Shown here piece after piece: positions 5,475 to 45,535 of a DNA stretch of 64,000 bases (within the stretch, counting starts at the first letter, position 1; every line of letters starts with the position of its first letter). The notes under the pieces were generated by a model, which saw only the letters and a program-made list of their open reading frames with translations, was not told the origin of the DNA and did not search any database. The translations under genes were made by a program, and so were the position numbers. Location of the stretch: the NCBI GenBank assembly GCA_002269645.1, contig NIVC01001269.1, forward strand, positions 1 to 64,000, read 5' to 3'. The DNA is from Macrostomum lignano. Lineage: Eukaryota.

Positions 5475-5880
5475 TTGTCATGCTATCTCAGCCTAGAGAC
5501 ATCCAAACTCAGCCAGCCCATCTCAACAGTGCGATTTTTTACGTAAGCCAGTCAAGTTTTACCATAGACATGCTTCTTAAGGCCATGCTATCTCAGCCTG
5601 GGACATGCAATCTCAGCCACTTTTCAGATTCTTACTGACTTTTCTTTCTGCGTTCATTCATTGCTGTTTGTTGCCATTTCATGTCACGTTACAGAAATGA
5701 TAGCATTGAGATCTGTTTGCAATTGAAATCTATATTGGCTGAGATTGCATGTCCCAGGCTGAGATAGCATGGCCTTAAGAAGCATGTCTATGGTAAAACT
5801 CGACTAGCTCGAGCCAAAAAACGCATTGCGGAATGGGGCTGGCTGAGTTTGGATGTCCGTAGGCTGAGATAGCATGACAA
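5475..5880. mobile_element. Palindromic MITE-like element
   Basis: ttgtcatgctatctcagcc at ~5475 is inverted at ~5862-5880. An inner inverted pair ggccatgctatctcagcctgggacatgcaatctcagcc lies at ~5581 and ~5737-5774. No ORF; TSD not resolved. Confidence 0.6.
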
Positions 5881-6498
5881 AAGCTATACTTAGGCACCAT
5901 AGAATTAGTTTTCATCAATGGTACACTTTGCTTGGGCAAATAATCACCATTGAAGTTTGCACCCACGAGCCCAGTTTAACTAATTAAAACCAGCCGTTTG
6001 TCACCATTGCAAAAACGACATACAGTTTGCGAGATTAAAAAAGAGCAATAGGAACTAAAGCATCCATGGAATACATGCGAATAACTTTGAAAACTTTTAG
6101 CAACTCTGCAAACAAGCATTTTTACGGAAAGAAAATAGCGAGATCTAACTTTCTTCCCTTTTAAGGCTTTCGATAAATCGCATAAGAGTACAGACAAAAC
6201 TTTTCACTCAGAGCATTCTCAAAACAACTTGTTGAAACAGAGCAAAGACATCAGGACATTTTGCCTTCGTAGTCAGCCTAAGGACCACTAGAACTTTTAG
6301 TCATCTTTGAGCCAGCCTTTATACTTGTTGTGACTCTGACTTGCTATTGGTCAGCAACGACTAAGTCCATTCAAACCAGTATGTAAAACGGTACGAATAA
6401 AAGCCAATGGTATAAAACGGTCCCTGCTAAAAAGAGCTTGAGACCGATCTTCACAAATTTTCTCCACCTTCTGATAATGCTGCAACGGAAGAATTGAA

Positions 6499-7638
6499 AT
6501 GGTAAGTTGAATTTTTTTGTATTAAATCTGTCACCACGAATAATCAATGACCTTGACGTTTATCCACCTCTAGACCAACGAGACAATCAGCAACCTCATC
6601 CCGTCTGAAGGAGGCTTCGAGAAATTCAACAGGTTGATCTTCTCCTGGCTATTCCCCCTCGTGATGGCATTCGGGACCTTCGGTAACGCCTCGTGCATGC
6701 TGGTGCTCCTGCGAAGACCAAAGTGTTTTCCTTTCTCTGTCCGGCTCAGCATGCTCAGCTGCTGCTTCGTGGACTTCCTGCTCGTCGCTGTGAAGTTCAT
6801 CACGCACTATTTGTCCCCAGTCGTCATGGGAACAATCCTAAACGTTAGCGACTATAGGAGGACCTCGAGCTTAGCCGTGTGCATCTTATACTACTGGCTA
6901 ACCATCTGGCTTCTGCATGGTAGCCCGTTTTTCCGTCTGGGCCTCTGCTTTCACTCGCTTGCCGTGACTCTGGTCCCGCTCAAGCAGGCCACGTTGCTAT
7001 GCAAAAGGAACGTGGCACTGTACCAGCTGCTACTGCTGCTGTTGAGTCTTATACCCTGCATCAGGATGTTCAGCACCTACTGGGTTGTTAAGTTACACAA
7101 ATGTTTTTTCTACGAGGACTGGATCGAGGTTTTCTACAGGATATTCACGGTGTTTGTAGGCCGAATCGTAGTGGTAGTGTGTCTGTTGGTGACCCTGCTG
7201 GTCATCTTGCTGGGCGTAAGGCGCACGCGGGACCACCTGCGCGGATCGGTGATCTCTGTCGGTAGTTCTCGCGCTGCTGGGCCTCAAACCAAGGCGGTGA
7301 CCAGCATCTTTGTGATGACTAGCGCCATTTTCTTTTTGTGTGAAATGCCGTACAGCATACTGAGAGCCCTGCTGAATCTAGAGCTAATCAGGGGCACCAG
7401 CGATCTGAGCGAGGTGGTCCGTCTATTGAATGGTCTGATGTACGTAAACCCGGCTCTTAACTGGCTGCCTCTCTTGATCGGAGCGAAGTTTCGACACGAG
7501 TACATAAAAATGTACTGCTGCTTGTGCTGCCGGGTTCAAGAGAGCTCCAATAGATCTCGTTTCAACGAAATTTCAATGACAGCTCGTGCGAATCAACAAC
7601 GAGCGAGCGCTAGTGCCTCATCAGTTGAGGCGGCTTGA
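6499..7638 (+). CDS. Class-A-like 7TM receptor, paralogue 2 (intact, 2 exons)
   Basis: ATG 6499-6501, intron 6502-6573 (gtaagt...ctctag), exon 6574-7638 in frame (M-TNETISNL..., N-glycosylation sequon). Seven hydrophobic segments; TM1 GN, TM6 FFLCEMP, TM7 NPALNW, helix-8 KFR. Confidence 0.85.
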
Positions 7639-9092
7639 TGAGCTAAATCGGGTTTCGAGCGGTTTGTTGCACTTTTTGAGCGGATTTTGCAACTGGAAGC
7701 CGCGAGTCGTCTGAGTTACTGAAATGAGGTTCTGAAACCCATCACTTTTTTCTTGCGAGTTTGAGTCACAAGAACTGGATCAATTGGTTCGTACAATAGT
7801 GATACTTTACTTTTCCTTTCTATGTAAACCACTTAAAATTTTTCTGATGCACATGCTTTGTAGTTGCAGCACTTTAGCATATTTAATACGCACTACCTAT
7901 AAAACTATACCCAACGTTTTATCAAGAAATTTTTCGCTTGTTGTGTGTTGCTACTCAATTAGAAAATTTAAAGCTTGACCATAAAAAATAGTTTAAGAAA
8001 GGGGTCGTTGAAACGTTTGGGAACCATCTACAGTATGGTTGGCCCTAATTCCCATGGACATGCAGGTTCATATCTGTTGCGCCAATGAACTTTTATTTAT
8101 ATGTTTTCTGTCAGTTATTTTCTTATATAGCTGCGTTTAAATAAACAAAGAGGAGGATCTGATCATAATATTATTGTTGTCCAAAATATGCATGTATTGT
8201 GATCTGTTTTATAAACGATAAGTCAGAGCGAATCTATGCCACACTTGTATCGATCGGTTTTAGCAATAATTTGATGGTACAAAGGGAGATGATCACGAAA
8301 GTAGCTGTTCATGCAAATGGCTAGATATCACGGCTATAGATACCGGGTTCTCGTACACGTACAAGAGCTCAAGATGACAACATAAAAATCGTGTTTTTGG
8401 ATAAACCATCATTTTCGCTTCTAAAGATGACGATTTCTTTTTTACTACTTCCAGTACAGCTTATAGTGACTTAGAATTTCTACAGACGATCGATGTATAA
8501 AGACGATGTATTATCAGAACCATAAAAGTAGTGTACTTTTTTGTGACGTAATGTTTCCAAGCAGCAGATCAAGCGACTGAAGGAAGTTGACTGATCAATT
8601 TCGAACTGAATGTCAATCACAAAGGAAGCCTCAAACAGAAACAACATGTCAAACATAAAAGAATCGTCATGTTAATTATCAAACAAGCGCCATGTTGAAC
8701 ATTTCATTGGGAAATTTCTGAGATGTCAGAAGCTTACGGGGTTAATTGTTGAGATGTCAAGGCTTTATGGTCATAAACTACATATAGTTTGTTGAAAAAA
8801 GTTCGATTGTTTGTTGGCTCCACAACGCTGATTGCTAGCTACTGTAAGATAAACAAAATCTGAGCGATTCTGAGCGATAATATCTATGCTTTCATGCAAA
8901 AACTTCTGCACCTTTGGTTGGAATTCCTTAAAAAGAACTGACAGCTTATATCTTGCCATCGCTGTGTAAAGAAAGTGTAATAATTAAAAAATTAAGCGAT
9001 TAAGTTTCTTTTTCAATGCTTGTCTAAACCTATGCGTAGTCTTTGTATATTGCATGACTTATTATATGCTGTCTTTACATTCCTTAACTAAC

Positions 9093-15730: not shown

Positions 15731-15873
15731 ACTCTCTGTGTCAAAAGTCCAAAAATAGTCTGAAAGGCATCTTCATCAATTAGAATTTAATATCCTCCAT
15801 TGAGGTGTGTTGAGTTTTCCTCAACACAGTTTTGAGTTTTGAGGAGCCGCTTGTGTTTTCCTGTTTTCCTAGA

Positions 15874-16497
15874 CCTCCGCATCCTCATAAACTAGACCTC
15901 CGCATCCTCATCAGCTAGTCAGCATCCTTCATCAACTAGACCTCATCATCCTCCATCAACTGGTCAGCATCCTCATTAACTAGACTTCCGCATCCTCATC
16001 AACTAGACCTCCGCATCCTCATTAACTAGACCTCCGCATCCTCATCAACTAGACCTCCGCATCCTCATTAACTAGACCTCCGCATCCTCATCAACTAGAC
16101 CTCACCATCCTCATCAACTAGACCTCACCATCCTCATTAACTAGACCTCCGCATCCTCATCAACTAGACCTCCGCATCTTCATTAACTAGACCTCCGCAT
16201 CCTCATCAACTAGACCTCCGCATCCTCATCAACTAGTCAGCATCCTTCATCAACTAGACCTCACCATCCTCATCAACTAGACCTCACCATCCTCATTAAC
16301 TAGACCTCCGCATCCTCATCAACTAGACCTCCGCATCTTCATTAACTAGACCTCCGCATCCTCATCAACTTGACGCTCAGCATCCTTCATCAACTAAACC
16401 TCATTATATCCTCATCGACTAGTCAGCGGCCAGCATCCTTCATGAACTAGACCTCAGCATCTTTATCAGCTGGACACTCATCATCCTTCATCAACTA
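15874..16497. repeat. 23-bp minisatellite
   Basis: Unit catcctcatcaactagacctccg with variants. Confidence 0.9.
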
Positions 16498-16956: not shown

Positions 16957-18007
16957 TCAAACGCATCTTCGACTAGCGCATCGCTTGAGGCCTATGAAAT
17001 CTTCTACAGACTTGTGTTTTCCTGGCTCTTTCCACTGCTGATGCTGTTCGGAACCTGGGGAAATTTATCCTGCCTGCTGGTGCTGTTAAAGAGGCCCAAG
17101 TGCTTTCCACTCTCAGTGAGACTCAGCATGCTCATCTGCTGCGTTATCGATTTTTTACTAGTCTCTGTCAAGTCAGTGACGCACTATCTATCCCCCAACG
17201 TGATGGGAACCATTCTAATGGTGCACGACTACAGAAAGAACACGAGCCACTTTGTGTGCATCGTTTATTACGCCGTCACCTTCTGGCTGCTGCACGGCAG
17301 TCCCTTCATCCGGCTGGGGCTGTGCTTTCACTCGCTGGCGGTCACGCTGGCCCCGCTGAGGCAGGCCAGTCTGCTTCGGAAGCGGAATGTGATCATCTAC
17401 CAGCTAGTGCTGCTCCTGCTCAGCTTTGTGCCATGCATCCGGGTAGCCAGCTCGTTCTGGTCCACCAGATCAGACCGGTCTGTTCCGCAACGATTCAATT
17501 GAAGTTTTCTATCGGATTTTCACTGTTTTTGTGAGCAGACTTTTTGTTGTCTGCTGTCTGCTGGTCACGCTGCTGATTATCTTGATTAGCATGAGGCGCA
17601 CGAGGCAACAACTTGGCGGCTCGGTGGTCTCTGGGGTCAGGAGCGGGCCGCAGACAAAGACTGTCACCAGCATCTTTGTTTCGACCAGTCTGATCTTTTT
17701 TGCTTGCGAAATGCCCTACAATGTGGCCAGGGCCCTGGTCAACCTAGAGCTGGTCAAGGAAAGTGTTTCCATAAAGCAGACGCTGCTCATGCTAAACAAC
17801 CTGCTGTACCTGAATCCGGCGCTAAACTGGATGCCCTACCTGATTGGCCGCAAGTTTCGACGCTTGTACACCGAGTTTTACAGCTGCAACAAGTGCTGCC
17901 GAAGCAGAGCAACCAACGTCCATGGACAGAGACGCGAGCATATTCTGATGCCAGAGAGCTCTGTTCAAAGAAATAATCTTGATAATGAGCAGGTGTACAC
18001 TTACTGA
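16957..18007 (+). pseudogene. Class-A-like 7TM receptor, paralogue 4, single frameshift
   Basis: Acceptor ttccag at 16956, then SNASSTSASLEAYEIFYRLVFSWLFP. The frame breaks near 17479 (about -2 bp versus paralogue 1) and resumes LFRNDSIEVFYRIFTVFVSRLF to the stop at 18007. Could be an assembly indel in an intact gene. Confidence 0.7.
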
Positions 18008-18349
18008 CTGCTGAGACTGAAGTAATTTCCGTGCTGTTTGATGACCATGAGCTCAAAAAGCAATTAAATAGACAGTTTGAAATCTTAAAATGTTATCTGC
18101 GAAACCATCTATTAGCTCTTACGGCAAAATATCCCCTGTAGCACCGTCCCATTCTCCTGTCTTTCTCCCATAGTGAGGAGTCTTGCTTCTATTGCAATTT
18201 TATTCTCTATGAACCCCTTTTACTCGTAGTATCATAGCTAACAGATTTGCTTGCCTCTTTCTTTTTATTTTATTTATTTTTTACGTCATTTTATCTGCTA
18301 ATAAAATGCTTCATTTTAAATGTTTTCTAATCTCGACTATTATAACAAT

Positions 18350-18625
18350 AATTAAAAAAAATAATAATTTATTACACCTACCCTAATAGGGAGATGTCCA
18401 ACCGACAACTCAGCCGCAGTTATTGCTGCGCACGGTTGTTCAGTCCAAGGACTGGGGAGTCGCCACACACCCTCAAATACCCCAGCTAATGCTGTCACCC
18501 ATTTTACAGCTGATTGAACTGAAGCAATACAGAGTTAAGTGTCTTGCTCAAGGACACAAATTGTTCCGATTGGGGTCGAGAATCGAACCCTCGACCTTTC
18601 GGTCATGAGTCCGTCCGTCTCTGTA
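18350..18625 (-). mobile_element. tRNA-derived SINE family A, copy 1
   Basis: Minus strand reads B-box ggttcgattc, then tgtgtccttgagcaagacacttaactctg...cagctgtaaaatgggt, then a TTA-rich tail. Confidence 0.75.
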
Positions 18626-19275
18626 CATGAGCGAGTACATGATTTCCTTTTCTCTCTGTCTCCCGCCAAACTTGCGCGATCCCCCTTCTCACCCAGTCTT
18701 CTCACCCACATTTTTCACTGTTATTACTTCTATTTCTACGATTTCACCTACAGTGTACATGCACTCACCCACTCTTTCCCCAACTGCTCACGCAACTCCC
18801 CTATTGTTGGCTCTCTTTCCCCGCCGCATACTATTTTCTTCCGTTATATTACTCTAAGTACACATCTTCATACATTGTCCTCCCTAATCCTTCCTAAGTT
18901 TCTACGTCGTAGTTGGTTCGCACAGCCTTGCACACCCCATTTGCACAATTTTTTATCTACTGTTCAACCCGTTACTTTCCTATTTCCTGGTTTGCTCCTT
19001 TGTTCTCTGACCCTCTATCTCTACCGGACCCCCGAATTGCGTCACTGTCTACTCGAATGCGCCCACCTCCCTCCAAATCTTCATTCTCCCTCATTTACGA
19101 GCGTATCACGGGTGACCCGAAAGATAATATTTTTTTTAGAAACAGGTCAGTGACTTCAGAAGACCGGGGCCGATCAGAAAGAGGGTATCATGGCAACGAC
19201 CTTGGAAAGCATCTTGTGACCAACTAAACACCTTTTGAACACCAATGAAAGTATGCGTAAAGAAGTCTAAAAACC

Positions 19276-19598
19276 TGCCTACTGATCACCCTGATGGTGA
19301 TTCTGGTCAGTGTGAAGGGCACCCGCAAGCAGCTGGGTGGCTCGGTCACCACATGCGGAGGTTCACGACTTGGCTGTCAGACAAAGATCGTGCCAAAAAT
19401 CTTTGGCTCGAACGGCCTCATCTTCTTTGCTTGTGAGAGTCCTTACAGCATTATGAGAGCCCTGGTCAACCTGAATATCGTAGAGGAAAGTGAAGAACTA
19501 TTCGATATATGTTGTTCTCCTGAATATGCTCTGGTGTACCTCAATTCCGTGCTATACTGGCTAACCCTTACCTCATCGGAATAAATTTTCGTCAGCAG
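19276..19598 (+). pseudogene. 7TM receptor fragment, paralogue 5 (TM5-TM7 only, decayed)
   Basis: CLLITLMVILVSVKGTRKQLGGSV...QTKIV...LIFFACESPYSIMRALVNL aligns with paralogue 4. TM1-4 are absent and there is a frameshift near the end. Confidence 0.8.
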
Positions 19599-20602: not shown

Positions 20603-23600
20603 CTATCGTAGAGGTGGAAACCTCAGTCTTTTCCTATTTGTCGATCGGTAGCACGCGATCGTCCTGTTTTCATTGGTTGCTGCTGTGGTGTGCGATGCGA
20701 ACGGCAACACTGACATCAGGTCGTCGTTCATCAAATCGAACTGGTTGATAAGTACGTTGCACAGCGTCAGAATGAATCTTCCAGAACACATGCTCCCTTT
20801 GACAACACTATGGATGTACAGACAGTCCTCATGTTGACCTACGTTCAGGTCGCCGACGCTTCGAGCCTCTGTTCGCGCCTGAACATTGCCTCGGTTTGCT
20901 TGAACAATAAAAACCTTGGGCTTGTTTTTCAGCTGCGGGCACATTCTGAACTGTTTGTACACACTTTTCAGTGAGACGCGACTTCCGTCAGCTGAGTACA
21001 CGTAGCCCTGCTCTCCGTGCGACAGGATGCAAAGAACAAGTGCGTCCTCCTCAGCGTACTCTTCTGGCTGCCGGTCAATCGTCAGGAGGTGACCGAAGGT
21101 CTCATGAGACGGGTTATTCAAGCTGAGGACGTCGAAGCCTAGCCGACTAAAGCAAATATAAAATCTATCGTCCATGAGAGATCGCGGTGGAAGATTTGTC
21201 TCTGGTGGAAAATTAGTGACTTGTATTAGGATGGCTCTTCCGCGACGTGCACTTTGCATCGGATAGTACGGAGAAGAATCTGGATCGTCTGGACCACCAC
21301 CATCATCGCCACCACCGCCACCACCTCCACCACCACCACCGCCACCACCTCCACCACCACCACCGCCACCATCGCCACCACCACCACCGCCATCTCCGCC
21401 GTGGCCGTTGCCTCTGTCGCTTGGCTCCTCCACAGGAGAGTTGGATGGATCGCCGCTCTCTTCAGGTTGGTAGCCGCAGCCGGTTTCGCTATCAATACTT
21501 AATCCACTTTCGCTTCCTTCGCTTGTTGGTGCGTGCTGTAATCTAAAATTATAATATATTGCCTGTGTTTGAATACTAATCCAAAGTAACTACGAGATCA
21601 AGATAAAATAGCAAACAACTTACATCAAGCGTGAACAGTTGATGTGACCGGAAAACTTCGCCCATTGATAAGCGTTCATATCCCTCTCTCCGGTCAAGCG
21701 CCAGTAATTCGCGTCTTTCATCAACTCTCCGAATATTTTAATGACCTCAATGTGGCCGCAGCGAGCAGCCCAGATCAGAGGTGTGTTGCCGAAGCAATCT
21801 TTCAGCCATAAATTTGCTCCGAAGTCACACAACATTTTGAAAGTTCCTGCGTGACCCTGTTTTGCTGCGTGGACTGCAGCTGAAAATTTATACACGTCCT
21901 GAAAAACAATTAGCATTTTCTTAGGGTTTCATTCATACCAAAAAGCAGGTTTAAATTTTTAACCTCACCTGGCAATCTATATCAGCTTTCATTTTGATGA
22001 GCTGCTCCAAAACAGATTTCTGGTCATTTATGGCCGCCAGAATCAGCGGGGTTTGTCGAAGATTATTTTCTCTATTTACTTCTGTCGTCATAGTGCTGGC
22101 GTTGTTTGTCAATATTTTCTCAAACGCTATCAGGACTTCTTTGTGGCCTTTGAGGGCGGCCCAGGAAATGGCTGTCCGACCCATTACATCCTGGACACTG
22201 ACCAGGGATGTGTCAGAATTTCTATTGAGCAGCGATAGTACCAGGTCATGTTTGCCTCTGGCGGATGCGATTGTTAGCAGAGTCTGATTCAAAGTCCCAA
22301 ACTTGTGGGCTGTATTCTCCTGAGATCTGCACAGGGCTGCAAGCTGCGCGTCCGACCACTTATCCGGGGACGCAGAGCTGAATATCCTAATTTGTGATGC
22401 GATAGATGGATGTAATGGATGTGATACGAGTATCTTTCACTTTTGATAGCCCCAGATGTATAGCATTTTATTTGTCTATCTAATAAAATAACAATTAAAA
22501 CATCAAATGGAATTTAATTATCAATGGTTGCTAATAAAGTTTGTACTTAAGAGATTAAAGCAGTGGTATCTGCGGATGTCTAAAACCAAGAAACATGGCT
22601 AACAGTGACAATAACTTACTGCACATCGTCAGATGCAGCGCTATTCAAGAAGAATTTCTTGATCAGACTGGTGACTGCAGAAGCTTCAGTACCGAATTTT
22701 TCGGATCCACCTTTCATCTCGGGCATGCCCAGCCGCCTGTTCACCTCTGCCACCACGTTCACAATGTGCTCTTTGCTGAATTTTTCCTCTTGAACAACGG
22801 AGCATAGAACCTCAGCAAGCGATCCCTTCTCGCCTAGTGAGCCACCGCGGCAGAGAAGAAAGTCTTTCTCAGGAAGTTTAAACGACGTCTCTTCCAGCGG
22901 GCAGGCGTTTAGGGTTTCAGGCTGCTGCTCAGTCTGAACAAAGAAGATCTTCGGTTTGTCCTTTAGAAAGGAGCACTGGTTGACTCGGAACCTGGCCACG
23001 ATGTCTCTTACTTCGACCTCTTCACCGTCGCTAGCGAAGAAGCTGGCACCGGTCCCGTGTCCGATGATGAAGCACACGAAGCTGCCCACGTCGCGGAGAT
23101 CGGACCTGACTATTTTGTTGACCGCTGCAAAGATTTCAGCACTAGTAGGCTTACTTGTGCATGGTTGGATTGTAAAACCAAGGTTTTCGAAGGTGTCGGT
23201 AATTATTTTAACTTCCTTCTGTTGGTTGTGGCTTGAGCTGCGATTGTAGGTCTCGACACTTATTACCAAGCACAGGCCTTTTGCCGTAATGCTCTCTGTG
23301 TATATGTCGTTTTCCGGCTTGTTTGAAGTTGAACTAAATGAAAATGTGCAAAATAGATTTCCAAATATTTTCACCACAATGATTCGAAAGATTCAAATTT
23401 TAGCAAAGATTTGTGTGAAGCTGACTTACGCGACAACTTGCTCTTCGCCAATCCTAACATGCGAATGAGCCCCATCAAACTGTAGCTCATGTTCCTCTTG
23501 GCCTTCCGTTTCAAACGCAGGAACCTTGCACGTCAGTCCTCCTTGTTCTGGTTTAGAAAAATATTTAAGTTAGTACTAGATGTACGTCACCTGGTGCCAG

Positions 23601-24810
23601 TGGCCAAAATGCCAGGTCAATTCGATATTCAAGCCTTGTACGAGCTAGAAAGCCAGAAAAGTTAGGAATCGAAAAGTCGGGAAAAACATGCATGTGATTG
23701 CTTTACCTTGATCATAAATGAGAGGATGCTTCATCAATTCGATAGCCAGCATCCGGTCACTCGGTTGTTTTTCAGTGCATTTGTTATAGAAATCTTTCAG
23801 ATTAGCCGAGCAACTTTCCGGAAGCACTGGAGCCCCCTGCCGTTCCACCCGGCGAACAATGGCCAGCATGTTCTTGCACTCCCAGTAGGGCCGTTTGGCG
23901 ATCACCATCTGGTAGATCACGCAGCCGAACGCCCACACATCGGAGGCGCAGCTATAGGGAGGGTCCTCGGTCTCAGAAGACAGGAACATCTCAGGCGCCA
24001 TGAAGTGCGGGTCGCCTCTCTCCCCAGTGGACGGATGCTCCGTTACTGTTTGGAGAATCTGGATGGCCAGACCAAAATTGACGATCACAATTCGATCGCC
24101 CGGACAAACGAGCACCGTCTTGCAGTTGATGTTACGGTGAATCACCGGATCGTTGAGGCCGTGCAAATATGAAAGGGCGTCGCATATCTGAAATCAGTCG
24201 GTGATTCAGGATTTTAATATCGTTGTTTAAATAAGCAGCCGAACACGTTTTTAAAATAATTGCCAATTTTTACTGTTAATTTTCTTATCCGCGTTTAAAT
24301 AAGTGGTCATGGACTTCTTAGTGAAGTCGTGTATTTTTCTATTAGCTCATTAGCTCGTAGAAGTCATTAAGACCCTTCGAGTACCCTTCAAGCCCTGGCT
24401 GGGTTCATGGCAAAAAAAACTTTCGATAATGTACAATTTTGCAATTATTTATTACGCACCTGTCTTGTAAGATTACAAATGCTCTTCTCCGGCAAGCCTT
24501 GTTGGGCGGTGATATGCCGTTCCAGAGTTACCGGTCCCGAAAGCAAGCTCATCTGTACGGTCACGCACATCTGCTCCTTGTCCACCATGATTCGTTTGAA
24601 TTTGACCACGTTTTTGTGATCCAATGCGCACAGCTTCTTAGCCTCTTTGTCGCAAGCCTTAGTCAGAGTTTCTAGCTTATCATGAGCTCCAGCTTCGACA
24701 AGATGCCATGGCAGGCGGATTTGTTTTACAGCCTGCAGTTGCTCTGCCTCGCCCACCGCTTCGGCGTAAGTTTCGCCTCGATCGCCTCTCGATAGAAGCT
24801 CCCGGACCAT
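20603..24810 (-). CDS. Gene A: pseudokinase - caspase-like - ankyrin repeats - poly-Gly - caspase-like protein (1095 aa)
   Basis: Exons 24810-24460, 24187-23707, 23547-23430, 23333-22620, 22377-21969, 21898-21624 and 21542-20603. All introns are GT-AG with phases 0,1,2,2,0,2 and the total is 3288 nt in one open frame. Kinase motifs AVK, HRNINCKT, VNFG, MAPE. Caspase motifs IIGHG/KPKIFFVQTEQQ and ILSHG/KPKVFIVQANRG. Ankyrin motifs GRTAISWAA, QTPLILAA, GNTPLIWAARCGH. An extra upstream exon cannot be excluded. Confidence 0.85.
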
Positions 24811-26083
24811 TGCTTGGCTTAGGGGAGAGTTTCAAAACAGTGTTTTACAGCTTCATGTGAGCTTCAAATTTACCTGTAATTTTTTGCCAGTGCAGTTAAT
24901 GTTTAACTGCAGTGTCTCTGCTTAGCCGTAAAAAAGTGGCAAGGCTTTTTAAAAGCTGTCTAGCTATAGTGTCATTGGTAGCAAGCTTACTCTGTCAAAT
25001 AGAGGCTTGTTTCTCTTGCCATTATAATACCTTATCTGTCTTTTCTCTTTTCTACCCCTAGTTTTCTAGCGCTGTCCAATAATATTTGGTTCTGTATGAA
25101 GAATTAAGTACAGTCTAGACAAGTACTTGCGTTGTAGGGTATAGACTGGGAGAGAAACTATCTGGGGGAGGGTTAATGTACATTAAGTACAGCACGTTGC
25201 TGTCAGGCAGCATTCTGGAGAGTTTTACACACTGCTTTGCATATCAAATTGAAAAGAAAAGAAAAATAATAAAACAAGAGTTGCATTTCATACCCATTTG
25301 TGCAGATGTTGTCTCTTGGCTCTCATGCCATTTTATAGCCAGCAATTCTTAGAACCTGCTCTCGTAGCATGGAGGCTTAAAACCAACTGGTTTTTAGTTA
25401 GAAATTTGGTACCTTATTCTACTGTACAGCGCTTTCCGCTTAGCTAGCTAGTGCAGCCAGTCCCTATCTGTCCTATTTTAGAAAGAAACAGTCATTTGGT
25501 ATATAAATAATAGCTAATTTCTCACTTAGTAGCTATATGTGAATTCGCTATTGGTAATTTCAACTAGCGGCCGTTGCTCACAGAAGCTTGTTGCAAACTT
25601 TTTTTGCCTGTAAAAAACTTTTGAAACATAACAACTAGTGAGAATTAAACAATCGCGAGTGCGACTGTTTGTGGCTTAAATACAAGGTAAGAAGCTTCAC
25701 GACAAGTGCTTATTTGCTAATCGTACCAGCTTTTGTAGGTCCAAGCGACATGTAGCCCCTGTCAGTGACTCCAGGGGGAGGCGTGGCGGGCCACATCATC
25801 CACGCCGAGTCACACTGCCCACAGGCGGAGTAGGAGGTGCTGCTGCTAGCGCTGCAAACGGGGAGGACAGACATGGGCTCGGCGCTTGTTAAACTGCCTT
25901 CTGGCTGACGACCGCGCACGCTCAAGCCTTCACACACGCTCTGTGGTGTGACGCTGAATGATACTGTTTTATTATCGTGTATGCATATAGGCTATCTGGG
26001 GTTAAATAATTATCCTATCTGTTGCTTTGTCCGAAGATATTTACGTTGGCAAAAGACCGCAACCAATTTTCCTTCACTTCAGC
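24811..26083. promoter_or_regulatory. Putative bidirectional promoter/5' UTR region between genes A and B
   Basis: 1273 bp separates the two divergent ATGs. Candidate 5' UTR introns are 25687-26082 (gtaaga...cttcag) for B and a short gtaaat...ctaag intron just upstream of A's ATG. Based on position only. Confidence 0.45.
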
Positions 26084-29000
26084 ATGGTCACAGACTACTC
26101 AATCGGGGAACAGATCGGTCGAGGCGAGTTTGCTAATGTCCATGCCGTCACTGTCAAGGATGCAGACTGGAACCCAAGACCCACTTGTGTAAAGCTGATC
26201 AGACTACCGAAGCACTTGGATCAAGGTTTAGACGAAAAAGAGCTCACTGAATTGGTAGATAAACACAAGCCACTAATTGGACTGAAACACCGGAACTTAG
26301 TTCAAATTGAAGATCTTCATGCCATTCCTCAAGACTACTCTGTCGCAGTGTTCATGGAGCGGTTTCAAGGAAAAACATTGGAATATTTGCTGAAAACGAA
26401 GGGTGCCATCACCCAAGAAGATAAGATTCGGCTCTACTCCAAGCAGGTGAGCACTGCATGGATTTCTATGACGTGTTAATTCACAAGCCCCATAACTAAA
26501 CAGTCTCTGACTTATATCCAATTAATTAGTTGGTTTTTAATTTGATTAAGCACAATTTTCAACTTCTCTGCAGATCTGTGAAGCTTTGAAGTATCTCCAC
26601 CACGACTTAAAGGACCCGGTCATTCACAGAAACATCTGCAGTAAAACAGTTATGATAGACGACAACGATTTAGTTAAGTTAATTGACTTTGGCATATCCA
26701 TTCAGCTGATGGATGCAGTGAGTCATCAGGTGACGCAGTGTCCGAGAGGCCACCCGAACTACATGGCTCCAGAGTTGTTCTTGGAGGAATCCAGCTCTGC
26801 ATTCCAGAGCCTCTACAGTCGGGGCTCAGACATCTGGGCTTTCGGTTGCGTTGTGTACGAGATGACCACTGGTGCGAAACCGCTTGGAGATTGCAGAAAC
26901 ATGCTGGCCATAGTTAACAAAATCAAATATCACGGAGCTCCAAACCTACCGGAGGCGAGCTCTGAGCAGCTGAGAGACTTCTATAAAGGCTGCATGAGAA
27001 AGAATAGGAAAGAGAGAATGTCGGCAGCAGATCTGCTACGACACGAGTTTCTCAGTCCTGGTATGCAATTTTATGGTTTTTTGAGCTAAATTTATATTTT
27101 TCACTGTTATTTTGGCTAGTTGTTAACTAATATAAGCTCTCTTTTAGTATATGACAAACGCTGGGACAATGTCCGTCTGCTGAGCAGAGGAGGCTTCGCA
27201 GAAATTCACGAGGCTCTCACAGACAAGGGCATCAGTTGCGCCGTAAAAACTCTGAAGCTGCCCCTTCAACTAGGTGATCAACGTGACAAAGTGCAGAGAG
27301 AAACCGATCGGGCTATCGAAAGCGAGATGAACCTGTGCAGATTACGGCATGAAAACATCGTAAAGATTTTTGACATTGTGCAGCCAGAGATTGCCACGGT
27401 TGTTGTGTTCATGGAGCTGCTGGATGGCAAAACTTTGGAATTGGTGATAGATGGAAAACCACTGGATGAGGGAATGATTCGTTTTTTCGCTTCACAAGTA
27501 AGCATGAATACTGAGTTGAATTATCAGGTTTGCTCATTATCCTGATCGCATTACTTTCGTTTACTCGCATTTCAGATCTGCAGCGCACTTAGCTACATGC
27601 ACAATCAGCCAGAAAAATCAGCCGTGATTCACAGAGACCTCAACTGCTCAAATATCGTGATTCTAAATGATAGCAAAGTCAAGTTGATTGATTTTGGCTT
27701 ATCGCACAGGCTAGGAACGTCGATAAGTCACAGCACCGCCTCGTCAGTGAAGGGCACGCTGAACTTTATGGCGCCGGAGCTACTGGGTGACGACGAAAAA
27801 ATTGTGTACAGCACAGCATCAGATGTCTGGGCATTCGGTTGCGCCGTCCACCAGATGGCCACTGGAGAGCGGCCGTTCGAGAAAATTAAAAACTTAAATC
27901 GTCTTATTCGCACTCTGAAAGAGCAAGGCGCCCCAGTATTGCCAGATTCGTGTTCGAGTCTGCTGAAAGATTTCTATGCCAGTTGCGTTATGCGCCAGCG
28001 CTCGGAGAGGGCGTCCGCTATGGCGTTGATGAAGCACGAGTTTCTGACTTTCAAGTAAGTCTGCTTGCATTTTGTCTATTAAAGTTCATATTTTATATCA
28101 ACGATAGCTCCGTATTTTTGTACTTTTAGTCGAGCATATTGTTTCCTTTCATTCCTTTAATTAGAGCCTCAGAGTACAAGGATGAAGACCGATACGAATC
28201 CAGTGCTAGCCAGAAAGGAATGTGCGCAATCATTGACATGCTCCCATCTGGCTCGGACTCAAAACTCTCTTCTAAAATCAGCAAAAGTTTTGAAAAGTTC
28301 GATTTCATCGTCAAGTCGCTACCAGACGCAACCTGTCAAACCGCTTGGAGCTTCATCGGGGACATCGCAAACAGTCAAGAGCTTGCAGACTCAAAATGCT
28401 TTGCTTGTTTTGTTATAGCTTCCGGTTCGAACGGACAACTGTACTCAGCTGACAATGATGATAGCATTGAAATCAGAGATCTGCTGGCCAGGTTTCGCTC
28501 TAGCCAGTGTCCCAGCCTGAAGGACAAGCCGAAGCTTTTCTTTATTCAAGCTGTGCAACCGGCCAGTGCAGCCGCCGGCTTGGACGAATCCGCGGCGCGA
28601 ATTCGAGACGATGACTTTCTGGTTTGCATCAACGATGGCAACCTGGATTCATCGTTCGTTGGGACATTGTGCACTGTTTTAGAAGAGGACGAATTTAGCG
28701 ACCTAGACATTGAAGGAGTTGTGGGTGAGGTGAACGATCGCCTAAAACTGGAACCGTTGGTTAAAGCGAAAAACCGGGCACTTAAATTCATGTCGGAAGC
28801 AGTTTCCACTCTGACGAAGAAATTTTACCTGAAGCCGGAACGGGTGAAACCGGATCCCAGGTGAGCTTTTTCGTTGTTTTAGAGGCTTATTGAGAAGAAT
28901 GCACAAAAATTAGCTAAATCAGCAACACTAATTGCTGGTATTCGAGGAGCACTTCATCCTGCAGACAAACAAGTTTCCAGTACCTTACTTACCTAACTTA

Positions 29001-31727
29001 CTTATTGCTCAATGAAACGGTTGGGCCCGATGATGCCATACGTGTCCATCTTTGATCACTTCGCTTCCACCACAAGAGCTTTATTTAAAACAGTTGCTTA
29101 GTGAATAGGAGGGATTTCTTATTCTTCCCATTGATTCATACTGTTTAGCATAGAAAGATAACAAATATTTCAGAGCGGAGTCGCCAGAAAAGTGGGACGA
29201 TGAACAATTGAAGAGGCTAATAGAGGAGGAGGCAAGTCAATGCGCGAACCCGGACTTCACCAGCCAAAAGTACGGCCCGTTGGGACAGACGCTGCTGTCG
29301 ATCGCAGCAGAGAAGGATAGCAGCGAGTTAGTTAAGCTTGCGCTCCAGGCAGCGACCACTGTTCCATCCATTCACTCGGATCTCGACGTGATGGGCAGGA
29401 CGGCCCTTTCCTGCGCCGCAGCCAAAGGATCAGACGCGGTTCTGGCCGCTTTCGAACAAGCATTCATCGATGCGGCCGATGTTCAGAAATCAGTGGTCAA
29501 CGAAGCCAACTATATGCGCCAGACTCCCATCATTGTGGCAGCCAAGCAAAACAAGACGAATGTTCTCGAGAAGTTGGTTCAGATGGGAGCCGATATCAAT
29601 CAGAAGGTAAGGCGGTGTTGATACCCTTTAGTTTTACTCGAAATTATATATTTCAATTACAAAAATGTTTTATCAGCTGTGAATCGCGAAAAACAGACAG
29701 AGATACGAATAGAAATAAACAATGCAGGATAGGAACCAATTGCTGATTTATTGCATAGTTTAAGAAGTAACTTTGTGGCCTTTATCAAAGGGCTCAAGAA
29801 ATTGTACAGCTGTATCCATGCGCAGATGCCCGACCAATCATGATGTTCTCTTTTGCTGTCTCGATGCGGTCTTCTTAAAGCTATTGATACGAAACAAATA
29901 TGTTTGCGTTTTTGCGATCGCCTACCGGCTTTCACGTTGGTCTTTTTGGGACTTTGAGACCTGGCTCTCATGATCTTTAGTCAGATGCATCTTGCGTCGG
30001 AACATTTGAAGGGGTTTTATCTCTGGGTTTGAGTGGCTAGAGTCGTCTGATCTGTATGATCTTCAACAGTTGCATCATTCGATATTTGGCTAATTAGTGT
30101 TAGTGTTTATAACTTCCGTCGTCTCTACCTTCCATTACTTTTAGAGTTTGTACTTTCTGTACATCCAGCTGATTTACATTTCAGGATATTGTAGAAGCCA
30201 CCGCATTGATCTATGCGGCTAAATTCGGATTTGTTGACGCGGTGCGCAAGCTGCTGGAACTCGGCGCCGATGCAGTTCTGGCAGACCGTTCGGATCAAAC
30301 ACCGCTAATTTGGGCAGCTCGCTGTGGCCACACCGATGTTATCAACGCTCTATCTGAAAAGCTTAATAGTCTGGAGCTCTGGAACCACCGGAGCACGCGG
30401 TTGCGCAACTTTACTGCGCTTGAATGGGCTAAGCTCTGCGGCCATGACGCCACTGCGGACAGGATTCAGCAGATGTAAGTAATTGGCGACGTAATTTTTG
30501 TTCCAATGGCTGAATGCTCTGTAGAAATCTGCACCTCCTGCTTTCATGGGCGTAGGAAATTGGCCGTCACGAGGGTCCTCCGTTTCCACCAGACTATTTA
30601 AAATTTTTCCGTGAATATCTCCTAAGATACTAAACTTTTTCCTGTCTTTAACCCTCACAATGACACGCATGAGCCATCCATGATCCTGTTAAGCTGTTAA
30701 GAAGTTTTTAATTATTTAAATATTTTAAATGATCGATGCAAACTATTTCAGAATTCAACAGATAACCGGAGCGACACAGGAGGCGGACGCCACTACCGAC
30801 CCACAATCAAGGGGTGGCGGTGGCGGTGGTGACGGTGCCAGTAGTGAAGCGACAGGAACTTCCGCCGGAGGAAGCGGCGGCGGAGCCGTTGGTGGAGGAG
30901 GTGGTGCTGATGAAGTTGGTGGAAGGGGTGCCGGTGGCGGAGGTGCCGGTGGCGGAGGTGGCAGTGGCAGTGGTGCCGGTGGCGGAGGTGCCGGTGGCGG
31001 AGGTGGTGGTGGCGGAGGTGGTGGTGGCTGGCCTATTTACCATATGAACAGCCCAGTCAGAGGCCTAGCAATAGTTATCAGTCGGAACACGATTCCACCA
31101 AATGCAGGTTTTCAGAACATACATTGGGTGCCGGATCAGCAGACTCAATCTTTTGTCGGTTGTTTAAGCGACCTACGCTTCGATTTCTTAGTGCTACCAA
31201 ATATTCCGAGAAACCTTTATTATAATCTCCGAACCACGGTACTCAATTTGCCGACGTATACCATCTCTGATTCTCTTCTCCTCTGCCTGATGTCTTATGG
31301 CGAACACGGCCGAGTGTATGACTGCAATGGAGAGCGTGTTGAGCTGGAAACAATGTTTCGACAGTTCAGAGAGTGTCCGCTGCTCTCTGGTAAGCCGAAA
31401 ATATTCATGGTCGATGCTGGTCGCGACATTCCTCATGAGAGACTGGTGTTGGAGCAGGCAATTCAGGAGAACGCGGGCCAGCACCAGGACTGTATTTACA
31501 TTTACAGTGTTGTAAAAGGAAACGCCTGCTACCAAGAGGTAGAGAACGGCTTTTGCTTCATGCAGTCCATGGTGAATTTACTGCGCTGGCCAAGTTTCGA
31601 TTCAGCCACGGAAGATTTTGCGTCCTTTCTGACGAAAGTCGTCAGCGACGTGTCGAACAAGTGCACAGCAAAGCAGATTGTCTGCCACACGAGCACCTTG
31701 CAGCGCCATATCATTTTAGGAAATTAA
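26084..31727 (+). CDS. Gene B: pseudokinase - kinase - caspase-like - ankyrin repeats - poly-Gly - caspase-like protein (1357 aa)
   Basis: Exons 26084-26446, 26574-27060, 27148-27497, 27576-28054, 28165-28860, 29174-29606, 30185-30474 and 30752-31727. All introns are GT-AG with phases 0,1,0,2,2,0,2 and the total is 4074 nt in one open frame. Kinase 1 has HRNICSKT/DFG; kinase 2 has CAVK, HRDLNCSN, DFG, GTLNFMAPE. Caspase motifs VIASG/KPKLFFIQAVQP and LMSYG/KPKIFMVDAGRD. About 6 ankyrin repeats. Confidence 0.88.
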
Positions 31728-32888: not shown

Positions 32889-33542
32889 CAGTGGCGTATA
32901 CTCGAGAATTTTATTTGCAGGATTTGCAACATTACAGAGACCAGTATTTGGTCTCTAGGTTAATACCTCGATCGCTTGTTGGGCGCCCCTGTCTCTTGGT
33001 GGGTGCCCCTGTCTCTTGGTGAGCGCCCCTGTCTCTTGGTGTGCGCCCCTGTCTCTTGGTGGGCGCCCCTGTCTCTTGGTGGGCGCCCATATCTCTTGGT
33101 GGGCGCCCCTGTCTCTTGGTGGGCGCCCCTGTCTCTTGGTGGGCGCCCATATCTCTTGGTGGGCGCCCCTGTCTCTTGGTGGGCGCCCCTGTCTCTTGGT
33201 GGGCGCCCCTGTCTCTTGGTGGGCGCCCCTATCTCTTGGTGGGCGCCCCTGTCTCTTGGTGGGCGCCCATATCTCTTGGTGGGTGCCCCTGTCTCTTGGT
33301 GGGCGCCCCTGTCTCTTGGTGGGCGCCCCTGTCTCTTGGTGGGCGCCCCTGTCTCTTGTTGGGCGCCCATATCTCTTGGTGGGCGCCCCTGATCTCTTCT
33401 AACAAGAGAAGGTAATTAAACACGAGCCCCTCTGTCATTCGTCAAGCTCGCGGTTACCTCTTATTTAGTTTCTTGGGGATTACAATTATTATAAAGGGGC
33501 CATTGGGGGGGGGCACCTCCACCCTAGCTGCGTACGCCACTG
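32889..33542. mobile_element. Non-autonomous hAT-type element containing a 20-bp tandem array
   Basis: TIRs cagtggcgta (32889) and tacgccactg (ending 33542); perfect 8-bp TSD agacatgt at 32881-32888 and 33543-33550. Internal array of gggcgcccctgtctcttggt at ~32980-33390. Confidence 0.9.
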
Positions 33543-38200: not shown

Positions 38201-41200
38201 TACCCAAAATTGCGTCGCATTTTTGTTAAAACTAAGTCGCACAGCCAACAAAATTTTGGAGGTTGCGCATGTATGAGCAAGACACTTAACTCTGCATTGC
38301 TTTAGTTCACCCAGCTATAAAATGGGTGCTAGTATTAGCTGGGATAATTGAGGGTGTATGTGGCAACCCCCTAGTCCTTGGACTGAACAGCTATATATGG
38401 CCTTCAGATGTGCCATGCAATAGCTATGGCTGAGCTGTTGGTTGCACATCTGCTTATTATGGCAGATATAATCAATTATTATTATAATAATTATTATTAT
38501 TATTAATATTATTGTTAATATTGCAATATAGAACTTATAAAGGTTGAATTTAGCCAAAATAGTAATTAAAAAATATAGTATCAAAGTAACAATCTTTAAA
38601 TTTTTCTAAGATTTCTTAGTTGAATATTCCTAACTACATATTGTGTAATACTAGTGCCAATGTGAAAGGAAAATAAAATTATTTAAAAAAATTTTCTTTC
38701 TTCACAAAATTTTAGCCTGCTTACTTTGGACCAGTGTGCCAATAATACTTTTGAAAACATTGGTCAGCAAGTGCAGAAGTATTTTACTAAACAAGATGGA
38801 TTCAAGGTTGGCACTGCTTTGGTAAGTAGAAGAATGCTTCATATGCCATTTTTTATATTTTAATAGTAGAATTTGAGTTCAATTGTTAAAGGCAGGTGGG
38901 TGAAAGGTTGTGAAGGGAGGTGGGTAAAGGGAGGTGGATGAAGGGAGATGGAATGATGGATGAAGGGTGGAGGGTAAAGGGAGGTGGGTGAATGGAGGTG
39001 GTAAAGGGAGGTGGGTGAAAGGAGGTGGTAAATGGAGGTGTTAAGGGGAGGTAGGTGAAGGGAGGTGGTGAAGGGAGGTGGGTGAAAGGAGGTGGTGAAG
39101 GAAGGTGGGGGAAGGGAGGTGGTGAAGGGAGGTGGGTGAAAGGAGGTGGTGAATGGAGGTGTTGAAGGGAGGTAGGTGAAGGGAGGTGGTGAAGGGAGGT
39201 GGGGAAGGGAGGTGGGGGAAGGGAGGTGGTGAAGGGAGGTGGGTGAAAGGAGGTGGTGAAGGGAGGTGGGTGAAAGGAGGTGGTAAAGGGAGGTAGGTAA
39301 AGGGAGGTGGTGAAAAGAGGTGGGTGAAAGGTGGTGAAGGGAGGTGGGTGAATGGAGGTGGTGAAGGGAGGTAGGTAAAGGGAGGTGGTGAAAAGAGGTG
39401 GGTGAAAGAAGGTGGGGGAAGGGAGGTGGTGAAGGGAGGTGGGTGAATGGAGGTGGTGAAGGGAGGTAGGTAAAGGGAGGTGGTGAAAAGAGGTGGGTGA
39501 AAGAAGGTGGGGGAAGGGAGGTGGTGAAGGGAGGTGGTGAAGGGAGGTGGTGAAGGGAGGTGGGTGAAAGGAGGTGGTGAATGGAGGTGTTGAAGGGAGG
39601 TAGGTGAAGGGAGGTGGTGAAGGGAGGTGGGGGAAGGGAGGTGGGGAAGGGAGGTGGTGAAGGGAGGTGGGTGAAAGGAGGTGGTGAAGGGAGGTGGGTG
39701 AAAGGAGGTGGTAAAGGGAGGTAGGTAAAGGGAGGTGGTGAAAAGAGGTGGGTGAAAGGTGGTGAAGGGAGGTGGGTGAATGGAGGTGGTGAAGGGAGGT
39801 AGGTAAAGGGAGGTAGGTAAAGGGAGGTGGTGAAAAGAGGTGGGTGAAAGGTGGTGAAGGGAGGTGGGTGAATGGAGGTGGTGAAGGGAGGTAGGTAAAG
39901 GGAGGTAGGTAAAGGGAGGTGGTGAAAAGAGGTGGGTGAAAGGTGGTGAAGGGAGGTGGGTGAATGGAGGTGGTGAAGGGAGGTAGGTAAAGGGAGGTGG
40001 TGAAAAGAGGTGGGTGAAAGGAGCTGGGGGAAGGGAGGTGGGTGAACGGAAGTGAGGTTAAAAATGAACACCGACAGTTTTTGCATTCTCATCTCGCATT
40101 CGCTTCGGCAGGTGTTGCTCCTGCAGAACCCCGATCTGCTGCCTAATCGGATGCAACAGCTGGTGGCTCTCTACCTGCTCTGGGAGTTGACCCGAGTTGA
40201 CCCGCCCAATGTGAACCCATTTCAACCCGCGTTTGTTTACGCCATGCGATCGGACGAGAACGATACGAGGCATTTTCGCGTTCCCTGCCTGCCGCTGCAG
40301 GAGCGCGTGTTCTTGTACAGCCTGCTGCAGAGCACCCACGCCAGCGGCCAGCCTTCTAGGGAACTCTTGAAGAAAACCCCTCAGCAGGTTTGTAAAACTG
40401 TTGGTGTCTGTCATCTTGAAATGCACGAGTCAGTGTTTCATTAATCATTACGAGGCAATAAATCAGCCTCAAACCTAAATAAATCATATATCTGCAACCA
40501 AAAATCATCATTCAGAAACCATAAATCATCATTCAGAAACCATAAATCATCATTCAGAAACCATAAATCATCATTCAAAAACCATAAATCATCATTCAAA
40601 AACCATAAATCATCATTCAGAAACCATAAATCATCATTCAAAAACCATAAATCATCATTCAGAAACCATAAATCATCACTCAAAAACCATAAATCATCAT
40701 TCAGAAACCATAAATCATCATTCAGAAACCATAAATCATCATTCAAAAACCATAAATCATCATTCAGAAACCATAAATCATCACTCAAAAACCATAAATC
40801 ATCATTCAGAAACCATAAATAATCATTCAAAAACCATAAATCATCATTCAAAAACCATAAATCATCATTCAGAAACCATAAATCATCATTCAAAAACCAT
40901 AAATCATCATTCAGAACCATAAATCGTCATTAAAAAGCCATAAATCATCCTTCAGAAACCATAAATCATCATTCAGACGCTATAAATTATCCCCAAATCA
41001 CCGCAGATAGCCAACAGTGTATTCCCGCCCAACGTGATTCCCAGCGAGCTGGACCTGAGTTTCCTAGAAAGCCCATACGCGGAGCGGGCCAAGGAGATGC
41101 CGGTGGTGAGTCGGGTTGCTATGCCGTGCGTCCTGTCCGATCCCGAGCGCCGTCTGGCCTCGATGGAATCTTACAGCGGCTCGGGCAGCTCTGCGGAGGC

Positions 41201-45480: not shown

Positions 45481-45535
45481 GAGGATACAAACAAAAACTA
45501 ATTGGCACAGTTTCGCTTGCACAGCCAGTCGGCAG

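Follow-up and report, generated by a model that had tools for sequence, protein, structure and literature searches.

What keeps in place a protein in which every enzyme-like domain looks dead? The question is raised by a gene of the flatworm Macrostomum lignano, here called Gene A, which occupies positions 20603 to 24810 on the minus strand of a 64,000-nucleotide (nt) stretch of contig NIVC01001269.1 (assembly GCA_002269645.1, positions 1 to 64,000; this whole stretch is referred to below as the window). Its product combines, in this order, a kinase fold, a caspase fold, ankyrin repeats, a Gly-rich linker, and a second caspase fold, and the presence of several enzyme folds, all inactive, in one protein still under selection is rare. 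We lean slightly toward reading Gene A as a noncatalytic regulator or scaffold that would enter the assemblies of its catalytically live sister proteins in a cFLIP-like manner, because this dead paralogue clusters with live ones, its caspase folds are predicted to be complete, and its pseudokinase and ankyrin surfaces are conserved. In addition, the adjacent live and dead versions provide a natural series in an animal where RNA interference and transgenesis work.

Gene model and catalytic residues of Gene A

Gene A comprises seven exons, all with GT..AG boundaries, which we modeled by joining open stretches of the three minus-strand frames. The resulting 3297-nt frame encodes 1098 amino acids (aa) and closes with TAG at 20603-20605; the original prediction had recognized the seven exons, and its length of 1095 aa differs from ours by a trivial shift at a splice boundary. 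Pfam identifies Pkinase at residues 6-273 (PF00069, 117.1 bits against a cut-off of 31.7), two stretches of Peptidase_C14 (130.5 bits), and Ank_2 (132.7 bits, 7e-39). Exon 1 (24460-24810, start codon at 24808-24810) encodes the N-lobe of the pseudokinase (aa 1-117), with a degenerate Gly-rich loop (SRGDRGE) and a retained beta3 Lys (AVK, 24721-24732), and shows 99% identity with the NCBI and UniProt models P0037 and P0001. The C-lobe (aa 118-277) is encoded by exon 2 (23707-24187), which carries HRNINCKT at 24116-24139, NFG at 24071-24079, and APE at 23990-23998. An acidic linker without a Pfam match (aa 278-316; exon 3, 23430-23547) connects the kinase to pseudocaspase 1, encoded by exon 4 (22620-23333; aa 317-555) with IGHG at 23054-23065 and QTEQQ at 22922-22936. 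The ankyrin-repeat domain (residues ~580-780) is divided between exon 5 (21969-22386) and exon 6 (21624-21898), which ends in the donor CTTGAT/gtaagt. Finally, exon 7 (20603-21542) encodes the linker, consisting of an acidic/Ser-rich segment and a 36-residue poly-Gly tract (21293-21400), and pseudocaspase 2 (aa 878-1098, 20606-21268), with LSHG at 21014-21025 and QANRG at 20888-20902. The ankyrin domain is N-terminal to this caspase fold, as in the platyhelminth ANK caspases. The acceptor attacag/ at 21535 was also tried as the start of exon 7 and rejected, as it breaks the frame with a stop 12 codons on; ttttag/ at 21542 restores the frame. A bacterial or viral origin was likewise rejected, Gene A being a eukaryotic spliced gene.

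Alignment of the kinase domain to human SLK bears out the dead motifs listed in the original prediction (HRN, a loop Thr, and NFG). IHRDLKAGNIL of SLK corresponds to IHRNINCKTVL of Gene A, which changes HRD to HRN (aa 134-136), and within the catalytic loop (HRNINCKT versus HRDLKAGN in SLK) Lys is replaced by Asn and Asn by Thr. LADFG of SLK corresponds to IVNFG, and DFG, present in SLK and in every paralogue, becomes NFG (aa 154-156). The HRN motif is also found in the second genomic copy of Gene A (locus L001, described below) and in P0001. A sequencing or assembly artefact was considered for the D-to-N changes and rejected, since the window, L001, and P0001 all share them. Of the remaining landmarks, APE and the beta3 Lys (K29) are kept, the latter being invariant across the family, and E56 stands at the expected position of the alphaC Glu but one residue outside the HMMER alignment. 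The closest solved kinases are SLK/LOK, WNK3, and NEK7, with E values down to 8e-25.

Both caspase folds had been described as keeping the catalytic His and losing the Cys (QTEQQ and QANRG), and alignment to solved caspases agrees. Pseudocaspase 1 was aligned to ancestral caspase-3/6/7 and to caspase-7 (PDB matches to caspase-3/7/8, E values down to 6.5e-15): 'FVCVLLSHGEEG' pairs with 'FVCFIIGHGTGA', keeping the His (IIGHG), and KLFFIQAC pairs with KIFFVQTE, which places Glu at the Cys position and turns QACRG into QTEQQ. Pseudocaspase 2 was aligned to caspase-2 (5.9e-15), where LLSHGVEG pairs with ILSHGEQG, again keeping the His, and FFIQACRGD pairs with FIVQANRGN, with Asn in place of Cys. 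In the family alignment, pseudocaspase 2 also lacks the six-residue small-subunit loop for the P1-binding Arg (S-W/F-R), which its paralogue P0004 has as 'VSFRDSRRGGYF'; this segment of P0004 aligns to 'VSWRDPKSGSWY' of caspase-9, its SFR corresponding to the SWR of caspase-9. The S-W-R loop is absent from pseudocaspase 1 as well. The large-subunit Arg is present in pseudocaspase 2 (PPRS versus FRS of caspase-2), and the small-subunit half of this second caspase, searched alone, gave no PDB sequence match at E<=10.

Despite these losses the two pseudocaspases, modeled with AlphaFold from single exons, are predicted to form complete caspase folds, dead yet folded. For pseudocaspase 1, the predicted local distance difference test (pLDDT) score is 86.0 and the predicted template modeling score (pTM) is 0.86, with Foldseek TM scores of 0.75 to 0.82 to caspase-7; for pseudocaspase 2, the corresponding values are 87.4, 0.87, and 0.77 to 0.82. 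Foldseek E values are about 1e-17 to caspase-7/3/6/8 for both, and the predicted folds include the C-terminal strand that in caspases forms the dimer interface.

Could these domains nevertheless be active by noncanonical chemistry, through atypical nucleotide binding or phosphotransfer, or through relocated catalytic residues? ErbB3, WNK, and CASK are the comparison cases for atypical kinase chemistry. K29 and the His of both caspase dyads are kept, and some predicted pseudoenzymes are noted to have migrated catalytic residues (PMC10211241). However, the HRD Asp, the loop Asn, and the DFG Asp are lost together, along with the loop Lys; neither caspase has a Cys at or beside the nucleophile position, where Glu and Asn are found; and the P1-binding Arg loop is deleted in pseudocaspase 2. 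Such activity is in our view highly improbable, and judged from its residues Gene A is very probably catalytically dead in all three enzyme-like domains.

A separate matter is whether the last pseudocaspase belongs to the same product. If the seven-exon reading is wrong in vivo, the protein would end after the ankyrin domain (at ~786-797 aa), leaving pseudocaspase 2 as an untranslated or separately expressed remnant. Such an ending is seen in UniProt A0A1I8GR64 (P0001, 98% identical), which shares exons 1 to 6 but ends at 786 aa because the exon-6 donor is read through into ATG TAA, and it would also follow from the frameshifting acceptor at 21535. In line with this, a frameshifting acceptor is used in P0006, a UniProt model resembling Gene B, and NCBI lists the second copy of Gene A as two partial genes. 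The first of these, however, PAA94593.1 (P0037, "partial"), joins exon 6 to the same in-frame acceptor as our model and runs 60 codons into exon 7 ('...CSRLILQRAPTSEGS...GGG'), with a junction that reads '...CSRLILQRAPTS...'. Because the NCBI annotation of M. lignano was built from RNA sequencing (RNA-seq) data (StringTie/TACO/TBONE) (PMC5730564), the in-frame junction is backed by transcripts in the sister copy. The second partial model, PAA94592.1 (243 aa, Peptidase_C14), begins 27 nt further on, within the same exon and without a change of frame. In addition, the same splice position and phase lead to full-length proteins in P0003, P0004, P0005, and the 1356-aa model of Gene B' (the second copy of Gene B, below), and the 313-codon frame of exon 7 is open and free of insertions and deletions (indels) in both copies (P=0.003). 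We thus regard the truncated product as improbable, and Gene A as probably one gene of seven exons, last pseudocaspase included; the window copy itself is presumably expressed.

The NCBI split of the sister copy falls at 13417-13445 of L001 (~21335-21362 of the window), inside the poly-Gly-coding repeat, with the two models nine Gly codons apart, and is probably an annotation artefact within one continuous open reading frame (ORF). Our model corrects such split and truncated gene models. Elsewhere in the family, the acceptor of P0006 lies 34 nt downstream (30752-30786 region) and shifts the frame, and the NCBI models of P0003-like genes also end after the first caspase. The competing splice choices before the last exon (21535-21542 and 21619-21624 in Gene A) may represent short isoforms like cFLIP-S, or else assembly artefacts.

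The second genomic copy and selection on Gene A

The second copy, Gene A', lies at locus L001 (GCA_002269645.1, NIVC01000006.1:672140-695556), which is collinear with approximately 11.8 to 33 kb of the window at 95 to 97% DNA identity. Such a copy is expected, because the M. lignano genome is duplicated; its assembly is highly redundant (PMC5730564). All seven exons, the splice sites, the stop codon, the frame, and the dead motifs are conserved. Between the copies, we observe 69 mismatches and 0 indels in the 3297 nt of exons, against 9 indel events in 1450 aligned nt of introns and flanks, a rate at which 20.5 indels would be expected in the exons (Poisson P=1.3e-9). The indel-free frames of exons 7 and 4 would by the same rate be expected to hold 5.8 (P=0.003) and 4.4 (P=0.012) indels, respectively. 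Divergence amounts to 2.1% in exons, 4.2% in introns, and 6.4% in flanks.

Ratios of nonsynonymous to synonymous substitution (dN/dS) were calculated from Nei-Gojobori counts between the two copies (synonymous divergence, dS, ~0.047), with P referring to fewer nonsynonymous changes than under neutrality. For the whole of Gene A, dN/dS is 0.30 (P=1.2e-6; 34 synonymous and 35 nonsynonymous changes). The pseudokinase (0.14; P=1.8e-5; 14 and 7 changes) and the ankyrin domain (0.21; P=8e-4; 11 and 8) are the constrained parts, with higher values for pseudocaspase 1 (0.72; P=0.38; 4 and 10) and pseudocaspase 2 (0.60; P=0.42; 2 and 4). Gene A as a whole is under purifying selection and is probably maintained by it.

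These figures bear directly on the idea that Gene A is a recently inactivated duplicate turning into a pseudogene, its dead motifs being early decay and its frame intact for want of time. Every catalytic center is lost, the dN/dS of the pseudocaspases is indistinguishable from 1, and the assembly is highly redundant after genome duplication (PMC5730564), all of which would fit such a history. The whole-gene dN/dS and the lack of exon indels speak against it, as does the recurrence of the same dead motifs in three independent copies (the window, L001, and P0001). Moreover, Gene A shares only 36 to 43% identity with its paralogues, and its 1098-codon ORF is nevertheless intact; an amino acid divergence of ~60% from every paralogue, together with this ORF, implies that it has long survived since duplication. 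A pseudogene in the making is therefore very improbable. The original prediction had argued from the uninterrupted frame that the gene is not decaying, and had named a dN/dS near 1 as grounds for refuting its reading; the first point is upheld by the ORF, intact in both copies, and the second does not apply to the whole gene, although the pseudocaspases, at 0.72 and 0.60, are indistinguishable from 1.

The uneven distribution of constraint leads to the main alternative, namely that Gene A acts on its own as a scaffold, sensor, or decoy through its pseudokinase and ankyrin repeats only, the caspase folds being vestigial spacers that take no part in pairing with live caspases. The ankyrin repeats would bind a ligand or partner and the pseudokinase would serve as an allosteric or dimerization module, as in RNase L or decoys of the plant ZED1/RKS1 type. 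Constraint is indeed concentrated in these two domains, the pseudocaspases are nearly neutral in the short term (0.60-0.72), K29 and APE are retained in the kinase, and there are transcript models without pseudocaspase 2 for near-identical copies. On the other hand, pseudocaspase 1 is the most conserved segment of Gene A relative to the P0003 lineage (59.6%, versus 44 to 49% for kinase and ankyrin), pseudocaspase 1 of the neighboring Gene B is constrained (dN/dS of 0.34, P=0.009), and both caspase folds of Gene A are predicted to be intact, in exons free of indels. On balance, we consider the stand-alone alternative unlikely. The retention of the pseudocaspases is argued by their unbroken frames and confidently predicted folds, a point on which the short-term substitutions are silent.

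Synonymous divergence between the copies is 0.013 to 0.027 in the caspase parts and 0.075 to 0.078 in kinase and ankyrin. Similarity to the paralogues forms a mosaic: pseudocaspase 1 (22640-23290) is 59.6% identical to the P0003 lineage and 33 to 35% to the other paralogues, and pseudocaspase 2 (20606-21268) is nearest to P0004 (40%) and groups with Gene B in the tree described below. Gene conversion within the cluster is possible.

Gene B, the live paralogues and the proposed role of Gene A

A divergent paralogue, Gene B, lies at 26084-31727 on the plus strand and comprises eight exons encoding 1357 aa. It is arranged head-to-head with Gene A, and the 1.27-kb intergenic region between the two starts (24811-26083) might provide shared or bidirectional regulation. 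A tblastn search for further family members within the 64-kb window recovered none besides Gene A and Gene B. The domain order of Gene B is pseudokinase, kinase, pseudocaspase 1, ankyrin, Gly-rich linker, and pseudocaspase 2. Its first kinase (HRN..T..DFG) is dead with DFG kept, the second retains the HRD Asp, the loop Asn, and the DFG Asp (HRDLNCSN) with Asn in place of the loop Lys, and both caspases are dead (ASG/QAVQP and SYG/DAGRD). Compared with its own second copy, Gene B shows a dN/dS of 0.37 (P=9e-9) and indels of only 6, 15, and 18 nt, all in frame; its pseudocaspase 1 has a value of 0.34 (P=0.009) and its pseudocaspase 2 of 0.83 (not significant).

A second head-to-head pair is found on NIVC01000006.1, formed by a P0003-like gene on the minus strand and a P0004-like gene on the plus strand with start codons 717 bp apart (L002, 6637-15562; NIVC01000006.1:648148-657073). 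The C-terminal caspases of this pair are catalytically complete. It lies ~24 kb from Gene A' (minus strand) and Gene B' (plus strand), the live genes being ~24 to 37 kb from Gene A'. Positions 1-8291 of the window align to a region that starts ~2.1 kb past the P0004-like gene, and we infer that the haplotype of the window has the same four-gene arrangement, with the live pair just past its left edge.

The two additional lineages, P0004/P0044 (PAA89054.1, PAA94591.1) and P0003/P0041 (A0A1I8GZ94, A0A1I8FVW6), all uncharacterized, share with Gene A the domain order, the exon phases, and a dead first caspase. At the Cys position of that caspase, Gene A and P0003/P0041 have Glu, Gene B has Val, and P0004/P0044 has His; the lack of Cys in all four paralogues makes it a family trait rather than a peculiarity of Gene A. 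It is in the last caspase that the lineages part from Gene A, as both keep the Cys, the His, and both Arg. The His motif is SHG in Gene A, P0003/P0041, and P0004/P0044 and SYG in Gene B, and the Cys motif reads QANRG in Gene A, DAGRD in Gene B, QSCRD in P0003/P0041, and QACRG in P0004/P0044. Both Arg residues are lost in Gene B, and the small-subunit Arg loop is deleted in Gene A. With SHG, QACRG, RRDG, and SFR, the last caspase of P0004/P0044 looks competent by its residues, as does that of P0003/P0041. The kinases of the two lineages also differ from that of Gene A (HRN..T..NFG) in keeping DFG, with HRQ..T..DFG in P0004/P0044 and HRD..T..DFG in P0003/P0041, the latter keeping HRD as well; Gene B has HRN..T..DFG and HRD..N..DFG. 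Among the family members, only Gene A has all of its enzyme-like domains dead.

Duplication is the usual source of pseudoenzymes, which mostly serve as scaffolds or act on relatives that are still active (PMC7586951, PMC10211241). The nearest precedent is cFLIP(L), a caspase fold without the Cys and a dead tandem duplicate encoded beside CASP8/CASP10, which adjusts the activity of caspase-8 by pairing with procaspase-8 in a heterodimer held by their (pseudo)catalytic domains; cFLIP also has short isoforms without the pseudocaspase (PMC7586951, PMC11121540). Like cFLIP(L), Gene A has lost the nucleophile Cys and is a duplicate clustered with live paralogues, and the database models of Gene A without the last pseudocaspase recall the short cFLIP isoforms. 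Unlike cFLIP(L), it has a pseudokinase and ankyrin repeats instead of death-effector domains (DEDs), carries two pseudocaspases per chain, keeps the catalytic His, and would have originated independently in flatworms.

By this analogy, the regulator or scaffold reading that we favor would work as follows. The folds of Gene A, with their surfaces for interaction, are retained: the pseudokinase, the ankyrin repeats, and two predicted caspase folds with the dimer-interface strand. Through these surfaces it would enter the complexes in which its live sisters take part, and it would modulate them by dimerizing or competing with their caspase and kinase modules. A cFLIP-like pairing of Gene A with the live paralogues is a more tentative proposal than a regulatory role as such, and both the physical interaction and the direction of its effect, inhibition or activation, are inferred. 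For the original prediction of a sensor, decoy, or regulatory partner, the live paralogues ~24 kb away supply a concrete candidate on the partner side; a sensor or decoy function is conceivable on the same grounds as before.

Several observations weigh against this reading. No match to DED, CARD, or Death was found in Gene A (Pfam, E<=0.01), nor any other known recruitment domain, and the databases searched yielded no orthologue of Gene A outside M. lignano. The pseudocaspase dN/dS values, which represent only 14 and 6 changes, are indistinguishable from 1, and the caspase parts differ in constraint from kinase and ankyrin (Fisher P=0.028), so the caspase folds may be only loosely needed, which weakens dimerization of the cFLIP type. 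With so little divergence between the two copies (dS ~0.05), and with sequence exchange between them conceivable, the selection test is shallow. Finally, pseudocaspase 2 is missing from the UniProt models of near-identical copies (P0001, P0002), which stop short of it, and use of the acceptor 7 nt further downstream (21535) would cut the protein off 12 codons past the ankyrin domain.

RNase L, one of the precedents named in the original prediction, combines ankyrin repeats, a pseudokinase, and an effector nuclease, and its activity is dimerization dependent. Its scheme of ankyrin repeats, kinase-like module, and effector might serve as a model for how the live family members work. RNase L differs from Gene A in domain order, its effector is a KEN nuclease and not a caspase, and the effector of Gene A is dead; we found no sequence relationship of Gene A to RNase L beyond generic folds.

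A bolder and rather unlikely view extends the regulator reading to the whole cluster, which would then be a flatworm-specific, self-contained death or immune signaling module that may replace the FADD/DED-caspase/cFLIP axis, reported as lost in platyhelminths. Each chain would carry a built-in FLIP, with the always-dead caspase pairing in cis with the C-terminal caspase across the poly-Gly tether, and a kinase-like switch and an ankyrin sensor would complete it. Gene A and Gene B would be fully dead, trans-acting regulators of the live pair or pathogen decoys, convergent with cFLIP and with integrated-decoy pseudokinases.

Should the regulator reading hold and the dead paralogues act on the live ones, the cFLIP principle would have been invented a second time, in a phylum from which FADD is reported to be missing (PMC11463336). 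This would illustrate how initiator-caspase control can be rebuilt from kinase, ankyrin, and caspase modules. The family is also relevant to how cell death is controlled in a model animal for regeneration and stem cells.

Wider relatives, origin and other features of the window

A search of 5.8 billion proteins recovered the same architecture only in M. lignano, in seven 90%-identity clusters, the other matches being kinase only or ankyrin only. We also compared a profile of eight family caspase domains with 1.84 billion representative proteins, followed by Pfam scans and cluster look-ups, and this search found no protein outside M. lignano with kinase, caspase, ankyrin, and caspase in that order. 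It did recover two further M. lignano types with intact catalytic motifs: an Ank + Pkinase + C14 protein (P0091, Mlig018903; HRD..N..DFG and QACRG) and an Ank + C14 protein (P0088; Mlig000705/009621). Outside the species, it recovered a Pkinase + C14 model of Daphnia sinensis, a jellyfish Ank-C14-Ank-C14 protein, and many tandem-caspase proteins.

In the literature, such an architecture appears once. PMC11463336 (2024) refers briefly to one M. lignano caspase whose pro-domain is kinase-like, possibly a member of this family, places it sister to the ANK caspases, and reports no second (pseudo)caspase domain, no loss of catalytic residues, no dead paralogues, and no four-gene cluster. Our literature search found no paper for the M. 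lignano gene identifiers of the family. The suggestion that the architecture might already be characterized is answered in two parts: it occurred only in M. lignano in the databases searched and is not wholly unreported, having been touched on once and never characterized, and the dead paralogues, the tandem pseudocaspase, and the cluster go beyond what that paper describes. According to PMC11463336, FADD has been lost in platyhelminths, ANK caspases are found in place of DED caspases in the species sampled, and ANK caspases are restricted to parasitic species. These ANK caspases resemble Gene A in having ankyrin directly upstream of the caspase domain and in belonging to the same phylum. The kinase-bearing M. 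lignano protein is treated there as a caspase with an odd pro-domain. By its domain content, P0088 appears to be an ANK-type caspase in a free-living flatworm, which runs counter to a restriction to parasites.

Family caspases were also placed in a neighbor-joining tree (237 columns, 200 bootstraps), which is distance based only and has unreliable deep nodes. The four first-caspase domains group with P0088 and P0091 (93% bootstrap), and the four last-caspase domains make up a separate clade (99.5%) that lies outside the M. lignano Ank-C14 proteins. No ANK caspase of a parasitic flatworm was identified among the sequences in the tree. The kinase of Gene A is nearer to that of P0091 (130 bits) than to any solved kinase (91 bits). 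A plausible origin of the family would be the fusion of a kinase-caspase gene with an ankyrin-caspase gene, followed by early inactivation of the internal caspase.

Apart from the family members, the window contains plus-strand ORFs with hydrophobic, receptor-like sequence at 17014-19584. The ORF at 17531-18007 has a weak match to the rhodopsin family of seven-transmembrane receptors (19 bits, below the cut-off of 30.5), and a similar fragment lies at 19294-19584; the region may hold a G protein-coupled receptor gene and its duplicated remnant. Many minisatellite arrays are scattered across the window, with periods of 14 to 54 nt and up to 86 copies (15869-16497, 32975-33398, 38889-40054, 40479-40991, 43343-44138, 44745-45481, 46694-48287, and 62963-63730). 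The G-rich array at 38.9 to 40.1 kb has a GC skew of 0.68, and the number of copies in the array at 15.9 to 16.5 kb is not the same in the window as in the second genomic copy.

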